Shown piece after piece: positions 4,303 through 64,000 of a stretch of 64,000 nucleotides of DNA. The stretch lies in NCBI GenBank assembly GCA_965202585.1, contig OZ241830.1, positions 32,860,001 through 32,924,000 on the forward strand, in the 5' to 3' direction. The first letter of the stretch is position 1. Each line of letters starts with the position of its first letter. The stretch is from Thalia democratica (Eukaryota). Under the pieces are notes generated by a model, which was given only the letters and a program-made list of their open reading frames with translations, was not told the DNA's origin and ran no database searches. The position numbers and the translations under genes were made by a program.

Positions 4303-23918
<19,616 letters not shown>

Positions 23919-46200: not shown

Positions 46201-49200
46201 TTTATTAAGCAAATAATTTATCAAATCACATTTTCAAATTACTTTTAAAAGATTTTTTTAATCACTGTTACCTTTATGAGTTTGTTTCAACGCTGTAGCA
46301 TATGAAGCAAACAAAAAAGTCCAAAAACAATAGCTTTCATAAAACTGTCTGCTTTTGAAAACATTCAAAAAAGTTCGAATTTGTGGCATAACTGCTTTCA
46401 TCTTTTCGTGTGAAAATTTATTAAATACCCGTGCACTTCACTGGCTAATTCCATTTTAATACAATGCCTCAGATACGAAAATTGTCCTTGAAAAGGGCCA
46501 ATTAGGTCCAGGTGACACCCGTCATTATCACCCATCAGCACCCACGTAATCCAATCAGCAGCGCCGAATCAAAGTTTTAATCCAATCAAATTCATATGAA
46601 CTGATATGTTGCGAAATTCCTCATAAAGGTTTTCGTGAGAAAGGCTTGTGTTGCACAAAGTTCAAACATTTTAAGTTTGATATGTATGTTTTTTAAACTT
46701 AAGGTCAACTTCGTCTAACCAATCCTAAAGTTTTAATATTAAATTTATTAATAAAACTAACATTTGACCACTTATTCATTTTATCTGTATAAAAAACCTT
46801 CAGTAGAAGCATGTTTTTTTTTTCTGTTGCAAGTTTGTAACACAGAAGCAAAAAATTCAAACTGTTAACTTATTTATTTTTAAACATTAAAGGATGACAC
46901 TTTTCTTCATTAAGTCTTTATTTCGGCTTACAAAACTATTACATGCTCCATTTACAATATGCGCCATTTTGTCTTACTTCTTTTGCAACGTATAAACTTT
47001 GAAATATTTACTCTCTAAAAGTTTAACGTGCGTTTTATACACAACTTAAAGTTGTAATTTTAGCTGGGTTTATTTAGTTCATATACATATTAAATGCTTA
47101 AAAGGCTAACATTATTTAACAATTTAAACTTTAAGTTTAGCTTTTTATTAAGTAAATGTCTAGATCGCAGAGTACTTTCTAAGTTTTGACATGTTTATAG
47201 TTCATTCTGATCATTTAATTTTACAACTGCCTTTGTCTTATACACATTTTTTTAGGCAAACGTTTAGATGTTTAAAAATTTAACGACATTTATAAATTAA
47301 AGCGATTCAAAAACATTTTATAAATAATAGATCTTTTTAGAATTATTATGTAAAAAAAGTTAACGACATTTTTCGATACGTTAAAGAAGTATTTGTCAAA
47401 AAAAATATTGTTTAGTTGTATAAAAATCAAATCAGCAATGTTTTAAAATGTATAAAGAAAAACTTTGTTCAGTATTTTTTCAAAACTTCAAACACATTAA
47501 ACAAAAAACAATGAGTGTTAAATTAAAATGGAATGCCTTTATAGTATAATAAAAAAAACAAAACAACCAACGTATAACACAGGCAGGAAGATCAGACCGG
47601 TGAAGTTGAAGGTGCTGGGCAGGAGGGCTCACGTCAGCCGCCAGTCCTTCCTGGCCGCCTTCTTCGCGGAGGAGGACGATCTCGCCACCAGGTCGCTGTA
47701 CCACAGCAGGAGGAAGCTGAAGAGGAAGAAGAGGGAGGCACCGCAGAAGAGGGAGGCCACTCTGAGGGACAGGGGCTGGAAGGCCGGTCAGTTTGTGATA
47801 AAAATTGTTTTAATACAAGCTTTTTTAAGCTTACAAAAGTGTATCCGAAAGTAGGAAGTACTTAGAAATAAGTTGATTAAACTTGTTTGTGAAGAAAAAA
47901 TAAACGAAAAATTATAAATTTTACAACACCTAAGAAGTACTTCTTAAAAACATGCTCTATAAAGTTTGTTGCAACATTAAGATTTATGTAATAATCAATT
48001 TCTATATACTGTCTCAATAAAGTTATTTTTTAGATGACGTCTACCCACCTGCATTTAAATTATATTTTAAAATTCTAAAATTATTCTAGACTTCTGTCAA
48101 ACTCAACCCAGCATAATTGGTCCAATAATCGCAATTAAGGCTTTAGTCGGGCACAAAACGCAACATTAATACATGATTACGTTATGTTGAAACTGAAACC
48201 TCATTATTCCAGACTTTTTAAATAAGCACCTGCTGTTTAGACACATTAAAATGGCATTGCGGTATGGACAGTTTAATCATGTGGTTTCGCTAATCCTCAA
48301 ACAACTGGTTGCATTTTAAAACATTCGTTGCGCTTGAACGGTTTTTGTTTGTTTTTTGTTGTCTAAGATTGCAGAAATTTACGGTTTATAAATCTTATAG
48401 TCGTTTAAACAGCTTTTTTTTAGAGTTAATAACAAACAAATGACCGTTTCTATAAATACTTTTAAAGAAAGCATGTTTATAACATTGGTTGTAAAAAGTA
48501 AACCTAATACTTAAACAGAAGCTATATACAAAAACTTAAGGAAATTGAAGCGATTAAATTAAGTTAGAAATTGTAAACATTGTTGTATTTAAACAACGAT
48601 AAAAACTAATATGTTATAACGATGAGAGGAACTAAGAAGTGAAAAAAAAAATATTTACACGAGACAACTTATGTTTGTCTTTCTTTATAATGTCCTACAA
48701 TGAAAACATACATTAAAGGTGCAGTTCTTATTGTTATTTTTTAACGTTAGCTTTTTAATGTATGAATAAAAATAAGATTGTTTGCTTTTTACAAGAGATA
48801 TGAATAAAATGTTTATGTAAACTTTATTTAAAACACACAAAATTTGCTATAAATACTATTTTCATTCACATACAGACTCTTCATCGCAAAAGTACTCGGG
48901 AAACTCGCTGGCCAACTCAATACTGCCGCAGAATATCGGTGGTCAGAACGTTGACAGCAAACACCTTCCGTATGGTGGCGCAAAAGAGCAACCGCAGAGA
49001 AGGCACAGCAGAACCAACAAGGCGAGGAAGAACCGCAAGCGAAAGAAGAGTCAGTTGGACCATTTTTTAATAAATTTTCTTTATATACTCCGAGATATAT
49101 TTTTTTGTTATTACGGTTTATTGAAATTTCTTGGAAAGTATTGTTATAACAAGTTTAGTATGTAAAATTTGTAGTTTGTTCGAAATGATTATTTTTATTT

Positions 49201-49963
49201 GTTTTTGTAGATCGCGGTCAGAAATATTCTCCACAGACGACAGCCCCACCCTCCGAAAATGAATTTTGTAGAAGGATGTCGCTGAAAGTCGACTTCAGAA
49301 AACTTAATTGGGAGGTTAATAACACCTTACCTATGTCCTAAGTCCTATAATTAAATAAAATTAGAAACTATATAAGGAACTTTTAACTTAGTCTTTTTCA
49401 AAACACAAGGTTTTAAAACTGTCCTTTTATCGGTTTTTGTTTTTTTTTAATAAAAATTTAGGATTTAAATTTATTAACTTATATAAAAAACTATATAGTT
49501 TTTTTAGCAAATTTTGTGTTCTGATAATTTTTAATCCACTTTCAACAGTTTTCCTAGGTTCTGATAATTAATTTTTTATTAATTAGTTACATTAGTTTTA
49601 CCTAAACCACTTTAAAAGCTTAAATTAATTTGTTTGAGTGAAAGTATTAAAACGAGCAACAACTTTCAGGACTGGATAGTGGCACCGACCCACTACACGG
49701 CTTTCCGGTGCGAGGGCTTGTGCGCCTTTCCCCTCCAAAACCACATGAACGCCACCAACCACGCCATCATGCAGTCCCTGGTCAGCCTCATCCAGCAAAA
49801 CTCCCCTCACCATGGCAACCGCCACCACCAGGAGCCGCTGTCGAACCCGTGCTGCTCGCCCATCGACCTCGACCCCATCACCGTCCTCTACTTCGACGAC
49901 TCGAGGACGGTGCTGTACAAGAAGTACAAGGACATGATCGTCAGGTCGTGCGGCTGCAACTGA
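40267..49963 (+). CDS. BMP5-8: TGF-beta family ligand of the BMP5/6/7/8 (60A/gbb) subgroup, divergent; 8 coding exons, 549 aa
   Basis: GT-AG exons 40267-40500, 40807-41068, 43427-43613, 45281-45471, 47583-47786, 48876-49049, 49211-49314, 49670-49963 (1650 nt, phases consistent). Signal peptide [17 protein letters not shown]. Prodomain motifs [13 protein letters not shown] and GWTMFDV. Furin site RKKR. Seven-cysteine knot FCRR...[19 protein letters not shown]...CC..LYFDDS....[12 protein letters not shown], closest to BMP5-8 ([26 protein letters not shown]). Subgroup assigned by motif recognition only. Confidence 0.9.
44270..44760. promoter_or_regulatory. Candidate intronic enhancer (BMP intron 3) with TAATCC/CCAAT composite sites
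   Basis: TAATCCAAT at 44608 and 44648, further GGATTA sites, GTAAACA, ATTGGCTG; GC-richer than the surrounding intron. Confidence 0.5.
45641..45913. repeat. Perfect 109-bp inverted repeat (arms 45641-45749 and 45805-45913, 55-nt spacer), MITE/foldback-like, in BMP intron 4
   Basis: The arms are exact reverse complements when checked base by base. (TA)n tracts lie nearby. No unambiguous TSD. Confidence 0.92.
46380..46660. promoter_or_regulatory. Candidate intronic enhancer (BMP intron 4) with two more TAATCCAATCA sites
   Basis: TAATCCAATCA at 46547-46557 and 46578-46588 in a GC-richer island. Confidence 0.5.
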
Positions 49964-51651
49964 TCGGGATTTTTGGCGGGAATTAAGTGACAGGTGAAAG
50001 AGTTTCGGCGGGTAAACAGTCAAGATGGTTGAGAACATAGCGAGAAGTTTTGTAATTCAAGACAGCTTTTTTTTTTGTGGGAGGTTTACTGAGTGTATGG
50101 CTGGTTTTCAAGAGTTAATGATGTCAGCTGAAGCGAACCAATGTTTTTTTTTTTAGTTTATCTTATAGAAAATTTCTTATTCCATTTTCTGTGTCTGTAG
50201 CCCTTTTCTTCAATACAAACTAAAAAATATTTTTTAATTTTCTTTTAACAATACCAATGATAAAAGTGTCAGTTTTGTTAAAGTAGGTTACAATAAAATT
50301 CACTGTGAGTACCTATTTATTGAATTAACTATTTTTCTTAATTCTTAGCTGTAGTTATATAGTTAAGTTTTTTAAAGCAAGAAATTACTTACTTATCTAG
50401 TTAATAATATTTTTGTATAACGTTAATTCTATTAGCAATTTAAAATATACAACCATGTATAAACTACTTTTTATCATATAAATGTAAATTTGTAGTAATA
50501 CAACTTGAAAACAGTTTTTCTTGTACAAAAATTACTTATACCTATTTACTTGATTTTTTTTTTTGTAAGCTTTTTTATACTAATAAACTTTTTTTATTAA
50601 CGTCATTGTTTAAATAACAAAAATATGCTACAGCTGTTTTAATTGTATCTATAAAAAAATGTTTGTAAAAGTTTATAAGGACTATTTACAAACAGAATGA
50701 TGTATTACAATAAGTAGGTTAAAATTATTTTCTCTTGACAAAAATTTACAAACTATATATGTTCACAATATTTGTCATCTAAGATTTTGTAACTATGGAT
50801 ACTTAAATCACGGTCCTTAATCTATAATTTAATTGATACACATAAATCAAAAACTTAAAAAAAGTTTCTTAACGACAGACATTTTTATTTTTTAAAGTTT
50901 TACATTATAAACATCAAAAAAAACTAGATTTTAGCTAATTTTTAACAAAAATATATGAGAAAAGCTGCTAAACAATAGAAAATAAAAGACATTGCTTTAT
51001 ATGAAAATATCCGAATAAGTAATAGTTATATTAGATGCATACATATCAATTTATTTAATGCATTAAATCAGGGCGTACATTAGAACTTGATTTCTTTGAT
51101 TTGATAAAATATCATTTAGGTAATAAAATGTTTTTTACGGAAAATATTTGTTTTGAATATTTGAATTTGACGAACCTTCTATTTTTATCATTAAAATTAT
51201 CTATGTACAGTGTAAAGTACATTTTACATTATGAAAACAAAACTAACAAAATTTGTTAATAGAAAGAACTATAAACTAAATATCGAAATAACAACATAGC
51301 TTAAAACACTTTTATTATACTAAAAGCACAATATCAGAAATTACAGACTCTTAATATTAACTAATCAGTTAAACAGCAGTAAATGTACTAAATAATTCCA
51401 ATGCAACAATTTTGTTGTTAAGACTATGAAACTAAAAAACAGCACAAGTATTAAAAAAAAACTGTCGCACCTTAAAAATTAAATTAAACTTTGCATCATT
51501 ACAAGGAACACGAAATTACCTGAACAGTTTTAAATAGTTAATGTAAATTAATAAAGACAGAACTTACATAAAGTCTACCTATGGGATGAATTTTTATACT
51601 GGAAAAGTTAAATAAATGTAAAATTTAAATACTTGTCTAACTGACCAACGA

Positions 51652-51927
51652 TCAACAAAGAGTGCATCTCCCTGGAAGAGTTGATTTTAGTCTGATCGCG
51701 CGATCGTAGCAGTGCAAATGAACAACACGTCCACAGCGTGAACAAGCTCTTCTGGGACAATCTACTTCGTTGATGCGGAGACACCTGTCGCACGGACCGG
51801 CAAGCGGTTTCAAGCATAAACAGCACGTTTCATCTTTCTTCCCCGGTTTTCCACTGGATCCAGATCCTTTGTTTCTCCTTGTTCTCATCGCACATTTGGA
51901 ACTTTTAGTAGGCATTTGGCTGTTCAT
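51652..51927 (-). CDS. Small intronless Cys/His zinc-finger protein (91 aa), Rbx1/APC11-like RING-H2-variant spacing, copy A
   Basis: C-x2-C-x7-C-x2-C-x7-C-x7-C-x4-H-x-H-C-x14-C-x2-C. The pattern is conserved in paralog B. A splice acceptor ttattttcag| lies 13 nt upstream of the ATG. The ORF is GC-richer than its flanks. Confidence 0.7.
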   Translation of the reverse strand: MNSQMPTKSSKCAMRTRRNKGSGSSGKPGKKDETCCLCLKPLAGPCDRCLRINEVDCPRRACSRCGRVVHLHCYDRAIRLKSTLPGRCTLC

Positions 51928-52872
51928 TTTTAATGTTATGCTGAAAATAAGCCAAAAAATAATGGTTTTAATATTTTTAAAGTTATGTTAAATTACTAGT
52001 TTTCTGAAAAAACCGCATTATTAGTCACAAAAAAAAATTATACCTCTGTATAAATGTTTAAAGTAAGATAATAAGTTAATTTAAGTAATTTGACAACTGT
52101 TTACTTCAAAAAATTGTGTTTTAATTTTGCTCTATGTTAGCATTATTAAGATAATACATACTTATACTTTAAACAATCGTTCATTTTCATTAAAGAAAAA
52201 GGTAATTTTTTAATATGATAATTAATAATCTACAATTTCATTTTAGCATTATGTTTAGCACAGTTTAATTTTATTAAAAAGGCAATACAAATGAAAACAA
52301 TGCTTATTTTTGTTTAACTTTAATCAAAACTTGATATCAAAAGTTATATTGATGATATTTTTGAATCATTATTTCCCTCAATATAATATCTGTATTTGTA
52401 CCTCTTTCAATATATTCAATTAAAATAATTTCGTAATTGGTTACCTTTAATTAGGTTACCTTAATAAGAAATAATAGTAATAAACAATAAATATCAAGGT
52501 ATTTCTTCACTTTTTATAAAGACTTATATTACTAATAGACTTATAGCTAGTGTTGCTTTGTTTACTAAACACTGAACACTTAATATATTTTCTATTATAA
52601 CCTCATATGCTCCTAAGTTTTGTGAATAATTGATATTCAAAATGGCAAGCCTAGTACAGAGTAACTGTTATATTTTTTTGTAGAAAATTAAACATTTAAG
52701 TTGCGCAACATTACTTACTTTTGAAATGTAAAATATCTTAATACCAATTAATTAGTTAAAAAATATTTTATACTAAAGCTTTAAATATTTTTTAATTACA
52801 TTCAATTGTTGAATTAGTTTAACTCAAAGCACAGGGACAGACAAAGTTGCTATAAGTGTTATTTTTATTCAG

Positions 52873-53602
52873 ACTTATCAAGGCAAAAGTACTCTGGAAA
52901 CTCGCTGGCAAACTCAATACTGCCGCAGAACATCGGTGGTCAAAACATTGAAAACAAACACCTACCTTATGATGGCGCCAAAGAGCAACCACAGAGAAGA
53001 CACAGCAAAACCAATTGGGCGAGGAAAAATCGCAAGCAAAAAAAGAATCGGTTTTGTTTTTATTTAAGTTGTACTATATAGCTCTAAAACTTATATTATA
53101 CATCATAAAACGATTTCTCAGTTATTTTTGGAATGTATAACTTTAAAAGTTTTAAAACTTAAATTTTAAGTTTTGTAGAATAAAGTTTTTTTGTTGAAAA
53201 TGGTCAGCAATATTCTCCGTAGACAACAGCCCCAACCTCTGAAAATGAATTTTGTAGAAGGATGTCGTTGAAAGTCGACTACAGAAAACTTAATTGGGAG
53301 GTTAATGACATTTTTAAAATAGTAACTAATCTTTTTAATTTAATTTTTAAAATAGTAACTACAATCATAAAGTTTTATAACAAATAAAAAATAGAAAATA
53401 GCTTAAGGAAATATTCCCCTAGATATTTTACAATTCATTTAAGATAGTCTATTTATAGCTGAGTTTATATTTTTGCTAAAATTTCTGTAAACAATTTAAT
53501 TCAGTTAATATTCAGTTTATTAATATGTATTAAAAATATAATAAACGTTTTTTCAGCAAACTTTGTGTCAGCATTATTTTTAGGTCGTACGGCTGCAACT
53601 GA
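52873..53602 (+). pseudogene. Decayed duplicate of BMP exons 6, 7 and the last 21 nt of exon 8
   Basis: Exon 6' 52873-53046: 25/174 differences, acceptor intact, donor GTCAGT changed to ATCGGT. Exon 7' 53197-53300: CAG changed to TAG at 53220-53222. Nearly all of the cystine-knot exon is deleted; only aggtcgtacggctgcaactga (53582-53602) remains, followed by a 3'UTR copy. Confidence 0.92.
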
Positions 53603-55226
53603 TAGGGATTTTTTGCGGGAATTAAATGACAGGCTTCTGCGAGTAAACAAATAGTTGAGAACATAGCGGAAAGTTTTGTAATTTCAAGAAAACTTTGTTT
53701 TTTCTGTGGAATGTTTCTGTGGAAGAACTGAGGTATATAGGGGATTTTTAAGAGTTAATGGTGTCAGCTGGAACATTTTAATGTTTTATTTTTGTTCATT
53801 TTTTGGAATTTTTTTTATTAATTTTCTGTGTCTGTAACTCTCTTCTTCAAGATGAATTGCTTTACAAATATTTTTTGGTATATTATAAGCAAAAACATTG
53901 AAAAAAGTTTTTATTTTGTTAAGGTAAATTACTTTGAAATTCACTATGAATAGTTGTTTATTATACTGACTGTTCTTTTTCCTCAAACGCAATTCTCTTA
54001 AGTTTCCACAGCATAAAATATTCTGGCTAATTCCTTTTGTTTTGAAACACTTTCAAACAATATTCAGCAATTACATTGTTGTAAAAGTTTAAACTCTACA
54101 ATCGTGTATAGTTGTTAGCTAAGATAGTTGTTTCTAAAAAAAAATCTTTAAAAATTAATTTTACGGACTGTTTAAAAAACTAAATATGTGATAAAGAAAC
54201 TTGTAACAATTCATTTTATTTTATAGAAATCTTTCTTTTTTTTAACTTAACAGCTAAAAACTAAAACTGCACTTCAGTGTAGGATAGGCAACATTTCTTG
54301 TCGGCGAGCCAGATTAAATTAAAACATTTCTAGCTAGCACCGTTATTATGAAAAGTTTTACTTACTAGTGAAAAACGTGTTCAAAGTAGTAACAAACTAT
54401 AATAACATTTTTATAAACAAAACTGTGCACTAAAAAGAAACTTAGAACAGCATCAATTTCTTACGGAAATCACTATACTTAATTAGCAAAATATTTTTTA
54501 GATTTTTCTGTAGAAGAAACTCTGGTCAAGTTCTTTAACACTATATTTTCAAAACATTTTGATTCAAAAATTTTTATTTCATTTTATTGTCTTATAATAT
54601 TAATCAAAAGTACTATTGTAAAAACATGACATTAGTTGTTATTTAGTAATATTTGTTAAATATTGAAAAAAACTGAAGTGTATTTATATTCAAATCTGTT
54701 TAAAATTATTTTTGTACATTTCGTTTTTACAATGATGTCTTTTAAGATTTTGTTAACATGTTTGACGAATTTTCTTATATTATTAAAGTAAATATCAATG
54801 TTCAGTACATTGTACAACATGACGACGAATTTATTATATATAACACTTGCAATGATAACTTAAACTAGATATGCTAAAAATTATGCAAAAAACTACACAG
54901 CTTAGAATTCAATTTTCATTTTTTGATAGAAACAATAGCAGAAGAAATAACAGGTTTATAAAAAAAGTAAGTCACTTAACTATAATACACTAAGTTGATT
55001 TATTTTATTAAGTGTATGAAACTAAAAGCAGTAGTTATAGGTGTTCAAAATTAATTTTTTAATCTTAGAAATTTTTTAATTAAATTCTGTAAAGTTGAAA
55101 TGAGCACGAATCTCACGAAGCTCTAACAAATCAATTTTTAAGACAGACAGTTTGCAATGCAGTCTACCCCTGTAGATAAACTATGCGATAAATGTTTTAA
55201 CAAAAGAGATTGTACAAATGTACAGT

Positions 55227-55433
55227 TTAAAACAATTCACAATCACGACACCTGCTTTTAAGACGAGGAACTGGTTGTAGTGCTTTTGCGTTCTCATTGC
55301 AGTGCAAATGATAAGCACGTTTACAGGCATTATAAGATTTTGTAGGACATTCAACGCTTTTGATATTTCTACATCTTGAACACGGAACTGCGACAGGATC
55401 GTTACAAAACCAGCATCGTACATCGTTCTTCAT
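55227..55433 (-). CDS. Zinc-finger micro-ORF copy B (68 aa from an internal ATG; ancestral frame 55227-55517 has a TAA at codon 20); possibly a pseudogene
   Basis: Codon-by-codon collinear with copy A without frameshift. It retains CWFC-x7-CSRC-x7-C-x7-C-x4-HLHC-x16-CRDC. Stop at 55458-55460; a new ATG replaces copy A Gly29. Same acceptor spacing (13 nt) before the ancestral ATG. Confidence 0.55.
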   Translation of the reverse strand: MKNDVRCWFCNDPVAVPCSRCRNIKSVECPTKSYNACKRAYHLHCNENAKALQPVPRLKSRCRDCELF

Positions 55434-58400
55434 TGGTTTCTCAGCAGATTCTGAACCTTAGTTTTTCTTAGCCTTCTTTTCAGAGCTGGAATTAGTGGTA
55501 AGTATTTGGCTTTTCATCATTTAAGTTATACTAGAATAAAAATAAACAAACATATGCTTAAAAACTTAGTAAAGATGTATTTAAACTAACTGTTTTTTAC
55601 TGTATCGTATTGAAAGTTTTGAAAAGACTTTTAAAACTCAATGTACTTGCACAACAAACTAAGTTTGTTCAGAAACACTTAACTAATCAAGCAATTGTTA
55701 GTCTACCTTAAAAAACTTTAACATTTATTTTGTTCTATGTTAGCGCTATAATGATTATAACTTAATACTGTAAATAGAGATGAAATTATGTTAAGAAATT
55801 AAGTGAAACTTTAAAATTATTAACTACAAGGTGCAAAAACTGTTTAGCGTAAGTTTAACTAAAGTCAAAATGGAGTTTTAACTAAAAAAGACATACTCTA
55901 AGGCTTAGTTTTGATTAGCATTAATCAAACTAAGACAAAAATGTTTATAGTAATGTTATAGGTAAATTAATACTTCTTGGTAAATAGTGTCTTTATTTAT
56001 ACATTAATTAACATAATTTATTCAAAAAAAAAAGTAATAAAATGCTTAAAACCTTGATTAGAAGTATTAGTTTTGAAAAACTCAAATCAAGGTGTTTTCT
56101 ACTTTTTTATATAGTCATATTTTAATTTAGCCAATAAAGTACAGTACAAAGTAGCTGCTATTTTAATATTTTTCTTCAGAAGTAAGTTAATTAATTTTAA
56201 TAAGGAAACTATCTAAGTTTTCTTGAAATAGTAGTCAGTTATTTTATTTAAATATTAATAAAAGTAAAACAATTCGTTTAAGGTTTGCTAAACTAAATTA
56301 ATTAAAAGCACAAGAGCACATAAATTAATTTAAGGTGAATTAAAAGAGGTTACAGAATTTAATACTTTTATTTCTAACCGATAAACTAGTTTTATCTTAT
56401 TATCTTATTACTACGGGTGTGTTAAAAGTAGTGTTCAAAACTAAATATAGTTAAGGATTAGCCGACAAGTTATACTATAATTAATAAAATAAGTTTTGTT
56501 TATAATTATTTTAGCTGTTTTCTTAAAGTAATGTATTTTATTAGGTCTTTTATTTCTAAAATGTATATTTGCTAGTTATCTACTGTTTTAATATTTTAGG
56601 ATATTGAAAATAAAGTACTTAGTAATAATAAGATTTATTATCAATCTTTCAACAAATTTATTGAGTTCTAAATATTTATATAGTAATAGTATTATGCATC
56701 TAATTTATGTTATATTTTTGAGACTTCGCAATTTTGTTTAGTACAAACAATAAAAGTCCGATGTAAAACTATCAAATTATTATCTTTTTATTTATAGCAC
56801 TTTTGAGCCCAAAGTTGAAGTATGTTATCAAATTGTTTTTGTGTTTTACTAATGTTTTAAATGTTGAACTTTTAAACTGACAAGAAGTAAGTTCTAGCTG
56901 AGATATAGCACAACAATTTTGTAAAATCTGAAAACATTTCTTACTTAAGCATCTTTCCCAACATGTGTTCGAATTTTTCATAAAAAAATGAGCTAACCAA
57001 CAAAAAAAAGTTATATACTTTCAATTAGAAATTATTAACAAGTGGGTGATATATCTTTTGGAGCCGAAAGTGGCATTTTAGTTAATAACTATTTAATTAT
57101 AATCTATTTCTAGACTATACACTACAACTTTACTTTAACAATTTTAAGTGCTTTTTTGAATATTTTGTTTACACTTATTTAGTTGTAAGTTATTTAGTTG
57201 CTATTTTTTAAAGTTTTTTTTTTTTGAAAGTTTGGTCATGTTAAATGTAGACGTCAAACAACGTTAAAGTCCATGTTTTATTTTTGTATCTCATAATTTC
57301 TTAAGTTTAGATTTATGAGATTACTATATCAAGTTAATTTACTTACTTAATCAAAACATAATTGAAGTGATAATTTAACTTTCTTTAAACTTTGCATCCA
57401 AATTTCTCTTTAGCTTTTATAATACTTTCATTTTATCAACTTTAAACTTACTAATTACAAAGTTTCAAATAGTTTACTTCAGGTATAGATGAAGCGAATT
57501 AGTTTTAAAATAAGTCAGGCTAAGTACTTAGCAGTTATAAGAGATTAAACTACCAATATAAGTGGCTAAACTCAGCTAGTTATTGTTTTTTAAGTACATT
57601 AAGTTATCAGGTCTGGTTGTTGTACATTTTTGGGGTAATTTTTGTTCAAAATCTGTAAATGCAAAAGGTATTTCTAGATTCATTTTAGAGCAGCTTAAGA
57701 CTGTGCTCAAATTTTTGATGGAGCAAACTTTATGGAAGGAAAGGAAAGATGAGTTCAGGCTAGAATAAAGAATGTCTAAAGAAGGGCCCACTACACAAAT
57801 TTTCATTGGCATCATATGTAATTAGTCATTAAGAAATCATATAAGTAAAATAAGTATAGCATTAAGTTTTTTGAAAATTTTAGGAAAATTATTAATTTTT
57901 TTGATAAACTAGTTGAAAGTACAATAGTTAAAAAGACAAGAGGAATGATCTTATACTAGGTGGAGCTTTTTTAGTAGAACTTTAAACAGGTTAGTTTACT
58001 ACTTCAGTGAGAACAAAACTTGTTCTCAGAAGGTATCTACCCAAAGCAAAGTAAGAAAAACTGTTTTAAAGGCCCTGAAGTTTAAGACTCTTTTTGTTAG
58101 GGATACCATTTTTTTTAATTTTATTTAACCTATTTTTCTTAGGTAAAATTGATTTTTCTGAGGTTAAAAAGTTTTAGGTTTGCAAAAAACCGTAAACAAC
58201 AGCTTCAGGGAGTCTATATAATATATTGAAGGCATTTAAGTTCGTGATTTTATTTTTGACATCAGGAAACAGCAAGTGAGGTTATTAGTAAAACTTTAGT
58301 AAAGTTAGAGAAAAGCATTGAAAATTTTGAGATAGGTCATTCGGTAGCACGTCAGATGTTTAGAAAATATTTTTATAAAAGTTGTTCTAAATTGCAGTTA

Positions 58401-59583
58401 GAAAAGATTGTTAGTAATATTCCTTAAATTTATTCTTCAATTAATATTTGTAAACTTAGGCCACAGTTTAAAATATGTTACTAAAGGGATAGTTTGTGTG
58501 AAGAATCATTAAAAAAATTATTGAATAAAATTCAGGAATAAGGTTTAGATCAGGGTTTCCCAAAATGGGCCAAGTTGTTGTTTTTATTCCTAATTTCAAA
58601 GGTTTTTCATTATCACTGTATTTTTCTCTGTATTAATAAGTTTCAAGGTGGTTATGGTTTACAAAATTTTAAATAAAATTAAGTTAGCATTTTTTTGTAA
58701 TTTTCAGTTAACTTAACCTCTTGAAAACTAGTTTTTGACTCTATTTTGTTTAATTACTGTAAACGTGGTATACTACGTGGTTTCTAAAAAAAATAGTTTT
58801 AAAGGTGAAAACGTTGAGAATATCACTTTAAATTAGAAATACTTATTCAGTACCTGTGATACTCAAAGTTATTAATAAATTCCGCCAATCCTGTATTTTG
58901 TGGAAACTCTTCAGTATTTGCAGGATCACGAGCATGGCCCTGCCACAGTTTTTCAGCTTCCTGCTTGTTGTACAGAAATATATCCTAGACAGTTTTTGTT
59001 GCTCTTTTATGCTGTTCACTTTAGTTTGTAATGAAAGAATTTTAGATGTGGCAAGATATCAAATCACACTTAATAACTGTTTAAGTTTTATGGAAAGTTT
59101 TTAGCTAAAGTCCTCGTTTATCCGAGCGTTTAAGAGAAATCTCGCAAGGTCAAGTGTTATACTGATGCAAGTTGAAATAAAAATAAAATAAAAATAAGAT
59201 AAGAAATTCCCGATATAATGTTGAATAAAGTTAAAAACATTGCTGTATAAACCAGCCACAGAAAGGGGTGGAAGAATTCTAGCCACAGCCTGCTGCAGTA
59301 AACATGTTAATCAAAAAAAAAAAAATTGTATTATTCGATTGTTTTGTGTAGAGTTTTTATTTGACAATGTTTTTTTTTCTCATAAACGTTTTTATAATTT
59401 TATTTTCAAGCAATTAATTCTCATTTTAATGTAAACATTCTCAAAGTATAATATTGAAATAAAAACTTAATTAATTTTTATCTTATTCCATTTTTATTTT
59501 TATTTATTTCACATGTATTTAAAAATGTAAAAGCTACTGTTACATTTAATTTATGTGTAAAAGTTTTGACCATATATAAAATA

Positions 59584-63439: not shown

Positions 63440-64000
63440 TTTTATGAAATTTGCAGTCTTTGCAATAAACTCACTAAAGGAGGTAATGCTAATACGTACA
63501 GCACTTCTTCTTTAATAAAGCATTTGCATTCAAAAAATCAAAGAGAAATTTTAGAGGCTTGAAAATCATCATCATCATCATCCATAAAGCAGTTAGTGAC
63601 AATTCGGCTCTAACTCCAAAACATAAAATGTAGTCTCAATGAATCAAGCTAATATTGAGAGTTATCGCCCTGTTTATCAACGGAAAATAAACGATAAAAA
63701 ACAATTAAAATGCATTAAAAAAATTATGAAAATGAATGCTATGTACAACCAACCATTTTCAATAACTAGTGATCAAGGTTCCATGTACCTGTTGGCTGCT
63801 TTAGTGGCAGATTACTTAATTCCAAGCACGAAGTACTTCAGTGATACAATGCTTCCTCAAAATTATGAAGGTTTGAAGATAAAAATACAAACTGAGTTTT
63901 CTAAAGCTTTATTTTTGTCATTTACAAGTGCCATATGGATAAATTTAAAAAAACAAAGACATCATATTTTTCTTTAACAGCACATTGGTTAAATGAAAGC
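63440..64000 (+). pseudogene. Decayed hAT (Ac/ZBED-type) transposase, continuing past the window end
   Basis: BED-finger remnant EICSLCNKLTKGGNANTYSTSSLIKHLHSK, followed after stops by QPFSITSDQG...YLIPSTKYFSDTMLPQNY...KIQTEFSKALFLSFTSAIW, a typical hAT N-terminal block. The first catalytic Asp of the TTDxW motif reads Ala. Confidence 0.85.

Follow-up and report, generated by a model that had tools for sequence, protein, structure and literature searches.

We analyzed a window of 64,000 nucleotides (nt) from the genome of the salp Thalia democratica (contig OZ241830.1, forward-strand positions 32,860,001 to 32,924,000), which consists of AT-rich animal DNA (∼25-35% GC) with zero runs of N. 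Behind a TGF-beta/BMP ligand gene, this window carries two minus-strand genes for small zinc finger proteins, termed here copy A and copy B. Both open reading frames (ORFs) had been noticed in an earlier, sequence-only reading of the window, and they lie where that reading had put them (51652-51927 and 55227-55517). On balance, we favor the view that copies A and B are tandem paralogs from a real, undescribed, lineage-restricted family of host genes, and we have considerable confidence in the structural and genetic description of this family presented below.

The coding exon of copy A (51652-51927, minus strand) is an uninterrupted ORF of 91 amino acids (aa), which comprises a basic, Ser-rich tail (aa 1-31) and a zinc finger with 12 ligands (aa 35-91); the last Cys of the finger is the C-terminal residue of the protein. 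Copy B (55227-55517, minus strand) carries a TAA stop at codon 20 (55460-55458) and an in-frame ATG at codon 29 (55433-55431), both of which had been described from the sequence alone. Its ancestral ATG is located at 55517-55515 and a second in-frame ATG at 55520-55518, the whole ancestral N-terminal tail occupying positions 55434-55520. The finger ORF that begins at the derived ATG (55227-55433) encodes 68 aa with 11 ligands, and a Tyr is found at a ligand column where the family has Cys.

The two copies share 40% identity over 93 aa (tblastn E-value 5e-17), and a tblastn search with copy A across the 64,000-nt window found no match other than copy B. The spacing CxxC-x7-CxxC-x7-C-x7-C-x4-HxHC-x14/16-CxxC is exact in both. 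Conservation between them is concentrated in the putative ligands, with 11 of 13 Cys/His residues kept, compared with 14 of the 47 remaining residues of the finger (Fisher p = 8e-4); thus, the Cys/His residues of copies A and B are shared beyond chance, in line with the original observation that only a minority of residues, including 11 Cys/His positions, is common to the pair.

Further relatives were found by profile searches. A word-index search with copy A retrieved one ortholog only, P0001 (locus L001), which is 89% identical in protein and is encoded on a 634-nt Tara contig. A three-sequence profile compared with 1.84 billion representative proteins recovered P0002-P0005, P0008 and P0010, and a second word-index search with a nine-member profile added P0012; three other candidates from the profile search (P0006, P0009 and P0011) were discarded as low-complexity repeat proteins. 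The family therefore has at least eight further members, all of 89-105 aa, unnamed and devoid of Pfam annotation. They are encoded on short contigs from marine metagenomes of Tara Oceans, and every known member comes either from marine plankton metagenomes or from this genome, as expected for the lineage-specific family proposed earlier. Among the relatives are two intact full-length orthologs of copy B (P0002 and P0012), which have no stop at codon 20, and three paralogs from a single sample (P0001, P0004 and P0008), suggesting that a close relative of this animal possesses at least three or four members.

By comparing the 10 sequences, we found that the mean pairwise identity is 93.5% in the 12 ligand columns, 49% in the tail and 27% in the non-ligand part of the finger, and that all indels are in frame. 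Ligand conservation in orthologs, on which the sequence-only reading had been staked, is thus observed in the family at large, and P0001 in particular keeps all ligands. Eight of the 10 members have the twelfth ligand, a Cys located three residues ahead of ligand 3, and the exceptions are P0010 and copy B (the above Tyr); this Cys is ancestral, and both exceptions result from its loss. This ligand, the wider family and a segmental duplication of ∼3.6 kb described below add to what had been noticed before.

Relationship of the finger to Rbx1 and APC11

Taken singly, copies A and B match the Pfam family zf-rbx1 below threshold (E-values 0.14 and 0.0097, respectively), and single-sequence searches retrieve MLL PHD3 and RBX1 with E-values of about 0.4-0.7. 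Across the family, zf-rbx1 is the top Pfam family in eight of nine members, though never above its gathering threshold, and zf-ANAPC11 is matched by one of the nine (E-value 8.9e-5). Using the nine-member profile against 177,635 PDB sequences, we obtained RBX1 chains as the top matches (E-values from 2.8e-6 to 3e-5), along with APC11 (8e-4 to 4e-3) and RBX2 (0.04), with PHD, FYVE and other fingers at 0.02 or worse. Hence, profile methods detect homology to the RING domain, with RBX1 and APC11 ahead of all other finger types. An hhalign comparison with two Rbx1-type repeats of a reference protein, P0007, gave 96.3% probability across 48 columns. P0007 (L012:1580-2158, L013:1499-2077), which was used as a reference profile, is a 192-aa protein from unrelated metagenomes with three tandem Rbx1/APC11-type RING-H2 domains (zf-rbx1, 154 bits), an architecture unusual for this RING type.

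The AlphaFold2 model built with the family alignment has predicted local distance difference test (pLDDT) values of 81-89 for residues 31-80 and of 42-46 for the tail (residues 1-31), and it predicts a three-zinc fold with the CxxC-x7-CxxC insertion. Its top structural match is APC11 (5jg6_D; Z 7.2, root-mean-square deviation 2.1 Å, 57 of 66 residues, 25% identity), and RBX1 is matched with Z 6.7 and a deviation of 2.0 Å over 55 residues. The first 39 rows of the structural ranking are all APC11, RBX1 or RBX2, followed by the RNF165 and Deltex RINGs, and a Foldseek search with an earlier three-sequence model agrees with this ranking. Together, the profile searches and the predicted structure support homology of the finger to the RING-H2 domain of Rbx1/Rbx2/APC11, with a three-zinc cross-brace, and favor it over a PHD finger; the resemblance to these proteins suspected from the ligand spacing is therefore strengthened.

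The family resembles RBX1/ROC1 and RBX2/SAG (zf-rbx1, PF12678) in its small size (about 90-110 aa) and in having 11 of 12 ligands in the same order and with nearly the same spacing, including the third-zinc insertion CxxC-x7-CxxC and the HxHC motif. However, the His that serves as ligand 4 of RING-H2 domains is absent from every member, being replaced by Arg in copies A and B (as first noted there), P0001-P0004 and P0012, by Thr in P0005 and P0008, and by Ser in P0010. In its place the family has a Cys at position -3, likely a substitute for the missing His judging from the alignment, which yields a PHD-like CxxC-x4-H-x-HC core. Other differences from RBX1/RBX2 include the last ligand pair (CxxC versus CxxD), the length of the last loop (x13-17 versus x10), the lack of a Trp equivalent to W87, and scores that fall short of the Pfam gathering cut-off. 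Both the terminal CxxC and the last-loop length are shared instead with APC11 (zf-ANAPC11, PF12861), the top structural match, from which the family differs by the absence of the APC2-binding N-terminal strand and of the ligand-4 His. The NDE-x-C motif of the family, located before the first ligand, may also resemble the human APC11 sequence.

Instead of the hydrophobic N-terminal strand by which RBX1 and RBX2 bind cullins, the family has a conserved Lys/Ser/Gly-rich tail with the consensus MKRxxPTxSSSSEKKVKKNKGSGSSGKPGKND, which looks like a nuclear localization signal (NLS). A search of residues 1-31 for the cullin- or APC2-binding strand revealed no hydrophobic run, and the model predicts this segment to be disordered, in agreement with the earlier suggestion that a basic, Ser-rich tail has replaced the strand. 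We also considered whether the tail is homologous to the N-terminus of RBX1 and rejected this, as the HMMER alignment extended into the tail with 2lgv alone, whose construct has a Ser-rich N-terminus, at a gain of ∼3 bits.

We consider it unlikely that the finger is instead a PHD-type reader, i.e. a small nuclear binder of chromatin or peptides that reads histone tails or some other partner by way of a C4HC3 core and an extra N-terminal zinc knuckle and has no role in ubiquitin transfer. The pattern CxxC...CxxC-x4-H-xx-C...CxxC does fit copy A, as pointed out in the sequence-only reading, and seven other members formally, with copy B and P0010 lacking the first Cys of the second pair. The treble-clef class of the cross-brace fold is common to both domains, the NLS-like tail would suit a nuclear reader, and the expected E2-contact surface is poorly conserved. 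MLL PHD3 is retrieved with an E-value of 0.36 by a single sequence and of 0.06-0.09 by the profile, one member matches Pfam PHD (0.0012) and PHDvar_NSD (6e-4), and PHD clusters occur among the neighbors in an atlas feature search (0.83-0.87). However, RBX1 and APC11 outrank all PHD fingers by profile (3e-5 versus 0.05 or worse); double PHD fingers appear in the Foldseek list only from rank 17 on, with lower template modeling (TM) scores, and the 50 matches with the highest Z include none of them. The signature Trp of PHD fingers, two residues before ligand 7, is absent from all members, which have in addition an Rbx1-like zinc site that PHD fingers lack. Moreover, all Pfam PHD scores appear to be below the cut-off of 24 bits, with an E-value of 1.9 for copy B and no match for copy A up to an E-value of 10. 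The top matches of the same atlas search are unnamed bacterial clusters (0.90-0.91) that share few features with the query, and these were taken as chance.

Several observations weigh against the assignment of these ORFs to a working family of the Rbx1/APC11 type. The zf-rbx1 scores of copies A and B (12.8 and 16.6 bits) are below the gathering cut-off of 31, as is the score of every other member, the best E-value among the nine being 3.5e-4. Cys-rich profiles inflate scores, the hhalign E-value is pairwise only, and both Foldseek and the AlphaFold2 model depend on the same Cys pattern as the sequence evidence. The E2-contact residues, which we take to be I44, W87 and P95 of human RBX1, are kept in part only: eight of 10 members have L, F or I as the I44 equivalent; the W87 position is occupied by A, T, M or L, and no member has a Trp there; and the proline of the C-P-x-C motif is found in three of 10 members, neither copy A nor copy B being among these. 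Copy A also stops at its last Cys. Finally, the relatives are gene calls from metagenomes, which include intact ORFs only, so the number of intact members is biased upward, and of three available sequencing runs none is registered as RNA, those that cover the region being of DNA only, with contigs that are unspliced, DNA-like and heterozygous at variant sites.

Genomic setting and upstream elements

The last exon of the BMP gene, which encodes the mature domain of the ligand (49634-49963, plus strand; Pfam TGF_beta E-value 6.9e-25), is convergent with copy A. Both belong to the first unit of a tandem segmental duplication (49004-52531), which comprises the end of the last BMP intron, the last BMP exon, intergenic DNA and, together with ∼600 nt of its upstream sequence, copy A. 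The second unit (53001-56124) contains a relic of the BMP intron and copy B with its upstream region. The duplication spans ∼3.6 kb, with an offset of ∼3640 nt and 60-75% identity between the units by blastn. A tblastn search found no second TGF-beta exon in the second unit. This unit retains relics of the last BMP intron (52884-53582 versus 48307-49533), and a stretch of ∼400 nt (49533-49933) has no counterpart in it.

In a related species, the ortholog of the BMP exon, 94% identical at the amino acid level, is found on a Tara Oceans contig (L009). Approximately 1.5 kb past this exon, the contig ends within a convergent finger gene of the B type, whose C-terminus (REQAKAMNPVLRHSKRCRQCGLF, followed by the stop codon) is identical to that of P0002 across this stretch. 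The arrangement of the BMP and finger genes is therefore conserved between species, which favors a resident host gene over a mobile element. Some of the intron pieces in L009:1-1048 are closer to the relic in the second unit (83.5% and 90.3%) than to the first unit (76%); the history may therefore include the loss of different copies of the duplicated BMP exon in different species.

Each finger gene is preceded by a candidate splice acceptor. In copy A, the AG dinucleotide (51942-51941), together with a pyrimidine tract, precedes a 13-nt segment of the 5' untranslated region (51940-51928), the whole element spanning 51928-51942 on the minus strand. In copy B, the AG is at 55532-55531 and is followed by the start of the 13-nt leader, which contains an in-frame TAA (55521-55532, minus strand). 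The earlier reading had placed an acceptor exactly 13 nt before the ancestral ATG in both copies, and we found a pyrimidine tract and an AG at this distance in all nine loci (the two copies and seven distinct related ones), the count in L003 running to the second of two adjacent ATGs; the AG is invariant across all eight aligned upstream regions. An in-frame TAA within the leader is present in six of nine loci. Thus, the ATG is the true start and the ORF the only coding exon, and the possibility that the finger ORF is an exon of a larger protein was ruled out by the same TAA codons between acceptor and ATG.

Most likely, the acceptor is either a trans-splice site for a spliced leader or the point at which a non-coding first exon is joined. 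Tunicates are known to use trans-splicing; a literature search on spliced-leader trans-splicing in salps found no paper in the collection searched. Joints seen in the sequencing reads were dismissed as evidence of splicing, as their sides are only 20-34 nt long and lie in AT-rich repeats.

A second conserved element is a block (GCTAACATAGAACAAAATAAAA) located ∼180-230 nt before the ATG. In copy A, it occupies 52104-52156 (minus strand), contains GCTAACATAGAGCAAAAT and is 74% identical to its counterpart in copy B (55707-55759, minus strand); it is also kept in L002, L003 and L007. This conservation is seen between paralogs whose remaining flanks have drifted to ∼60% identity. The block is a candidate core promoter or outron element. 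A splice donor was sought within the block and none convincing was found.

In the 3' untranslated region, a motif of the form ATCNCATAG ... GTAGAC recurs ∼70-100 nt past the stop codon in several members (51560-51600 and 55140-55190 on the minus strand of the window, and the 3' flanks of L001, L002, L005 and L008); no canonical AATAAA was observed near it. An Rfam scan of the 48-58 kb region gave no match.

Elsewhere in the window, the minus strand of the 4600-15000 region contains fragments of coiled-coil ORFs similar to myosin heavy chain (for example 4669-4950, 5660-5950 and 10243-10542), which have the appearance of muscle myosin exons. At the window edge, a 112-aa ORF on the plus strand (63639-63977; MNQANIESYRPVYQRKINDKK...) is possibly a portion of a transposase-like gene.

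Selection and the state of copy B

Comparison of intact members shows moderate purifying selection on their coding sequences. The ratio of nonsynonymous to synonymous substitution rates (dN/dS, or omega) is 0.44 between copy A and L001, with all ligands kept, three of them with a synonymous switch between TGC and TGT; over their final 78 nt the two coding sequences are identical, and the flanks are ∼10% divergent. For the pair of intact B-type orthologs, L002 and L010, the ratio is 0.54, and between L003 and L004 we counted one synonymous and zero nonsynonymous changes in the presence of diverged flanks. As estimated from these alignments, residues of the family other than the ligands and the tail evolve rapidly.

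Copy B behaves differently. Comparisons with its orthologs gave omega of 1.09-1.44, and its coding sequence identity to an ortholog (75.8%) equals the identity of the flanks (76-79%); omega for the branch leading to copy B is ∼1.8, a value based on small counts. In copy B, the ligands show much less change than the remaining residues (P = 0.005; 2e-4 for the pair). By comparison with the synonymous rate, however, the retention of 11 of 12 ligands is not significant (P = 0.075). The sequence-only reading had proposed diversifying selection. The fast evolution of non-ligand residues is borne out, but omega above 1 is confined to the lineage of copy B and is not significant; positive selection on the family is possible. 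A second allele of the C-terminus of copy B (55237-55290), seen in public DNA runs of other individuals, is highly divergent, with seven single-nucleotide polymorphisms in 54 nt, five of them nonsynonymous and changing four residues (N>K, Q>H, S>H and E>G), and keeps all Cys; the run labelled organism B is homozygous for this allele.

These data suggest that copy A is a working gene in this genome and that copy B is disabled. Copy B would be either a recently disabled gene or a tail-less variant. Because of the stop codon, the lost ligand and the existence of intact orthologs, decay is the simpler reading of the two; support for copy B as a working variant that consists of the finger alone is no stronger than for a gene in decay.

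This raises the question of whether all these ORFs are relics, i.e. unexpressed, decaying duplicates of an old RING gene, in which the cysteines are kept owing to limited time or chance. We regard such a status as very unlikely for the family as a whole. It would account for the premature stop and the lost ligand of copy B, for a divergence from orthologs as fast as that of the flanks, for ligand retention that does not differ significantly from expectation when the dS of the copy B branch is used as the neutral rate, and for the identity between the coding sequences of copies A and B (61.5%), which is about the same as that of flanking non-coding DNA. It does not account for the low omega of the intact members, including one pair without nonsynonymous changes, for the strictly in-frame indels among the 10 members, for the gap between ligand columns and neighboring residues, or for the persistence of the acceptor, the 5' leader and the upstream block while other flanks diverged to about 60%. 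Therefore, decay is a suitable description of copy B, not of copy A or the family.

A derivation of the finger genes from a transposon or virus, whether as cargo or as remnants, is highly improbable, although it was the alternative raised in the sequence-only reading. The genes are small, multicopy and fast-evolving with one coding exon, as this origin would suggest. However, neither copy A nor copy B is bracketed by inverted or long terminal repeats (inverted repeats in 50000-58500 are limited to AT-rich arms of 26-34 nt with 70-82% complementarity), the copies arose by a tandem duplication that includes BMP intron DNA, another species retains the position beside the last BMP exon, and the search of 1.84 billion representative proteins yielded no relatives linked to a transposase or a virus.

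Possible functions of the family

Taking the members to be Rbx1/APC11-related host proteins of ∼90-105 residues, each would combine a disordered, basic and Ser-rich tail with a three-zinc finger that lacks a scaffold anchor, and would act free of cullins. The tail may bring the protein into the nucleus or to a common partner or docking site, and the fast-changing surface of the finger might bind an E2 (conjugating) enzyme charged with ubiquitin or NEDD8, or other partners, so that the protein would work either as a minimal E3 ligase or as a competitor (decoy). Copy B could at best yield a tail-less finger through re-initiation at codon 29. An E2-directed function of this kind is tentative, and we are more inclined to doubt it than to accept it.

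A precedent for an inhibitory APC11-like RING is provided by PACR of Orf virus and its relatives, an APC11-like RING-H2 protein in which altered RING residues block E2 binding and turn it into an inhibitor (PMC3185573). PACR is viral and retains the APC2-binding part, replacing APC11 in the complex, whereas the family described here is cellular and lacks the scaffold-binding part; thus, any decoy action of its members would have to be on the side of the E2 or another partner.

In its most far-reaching form, the hypothesis would be that salps turned the catalytic RING of cullin ligases or of the anaphase-promoting complex (APC/C) into a free-standing, multi-copy family of microproteins, targeted by their conserved tails to a single shared site or partner and with finger surfaces under recurrent positive selection, which serve as cullin-independent E3 ligases or as decoys of E2~ubiquitin or E2~NEDD8 in a germline, immune or conflict setting. 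We think this complete scenario quite unlikely to be correct.

If the genes prove silent, the finding shrinks to an ordinary decaying gene duplicate. A cellular family that retains the Rbx1/APC11-type RING but has shed the scaffold anchor, exchanged one zinc ligand and diversified its surface would be a natural experiment on a bare catalytic RING, which could reveal a minimal E3, E2 sequestration or something new. Outside its scaffold-bound forms, the three-zinc RING of the Rbx1/APC11 type is best known from the viral inhibitor PACR, and the family would add to the lineage-specific genes of thaliacean tunicates, whose genomes are barely annotated.

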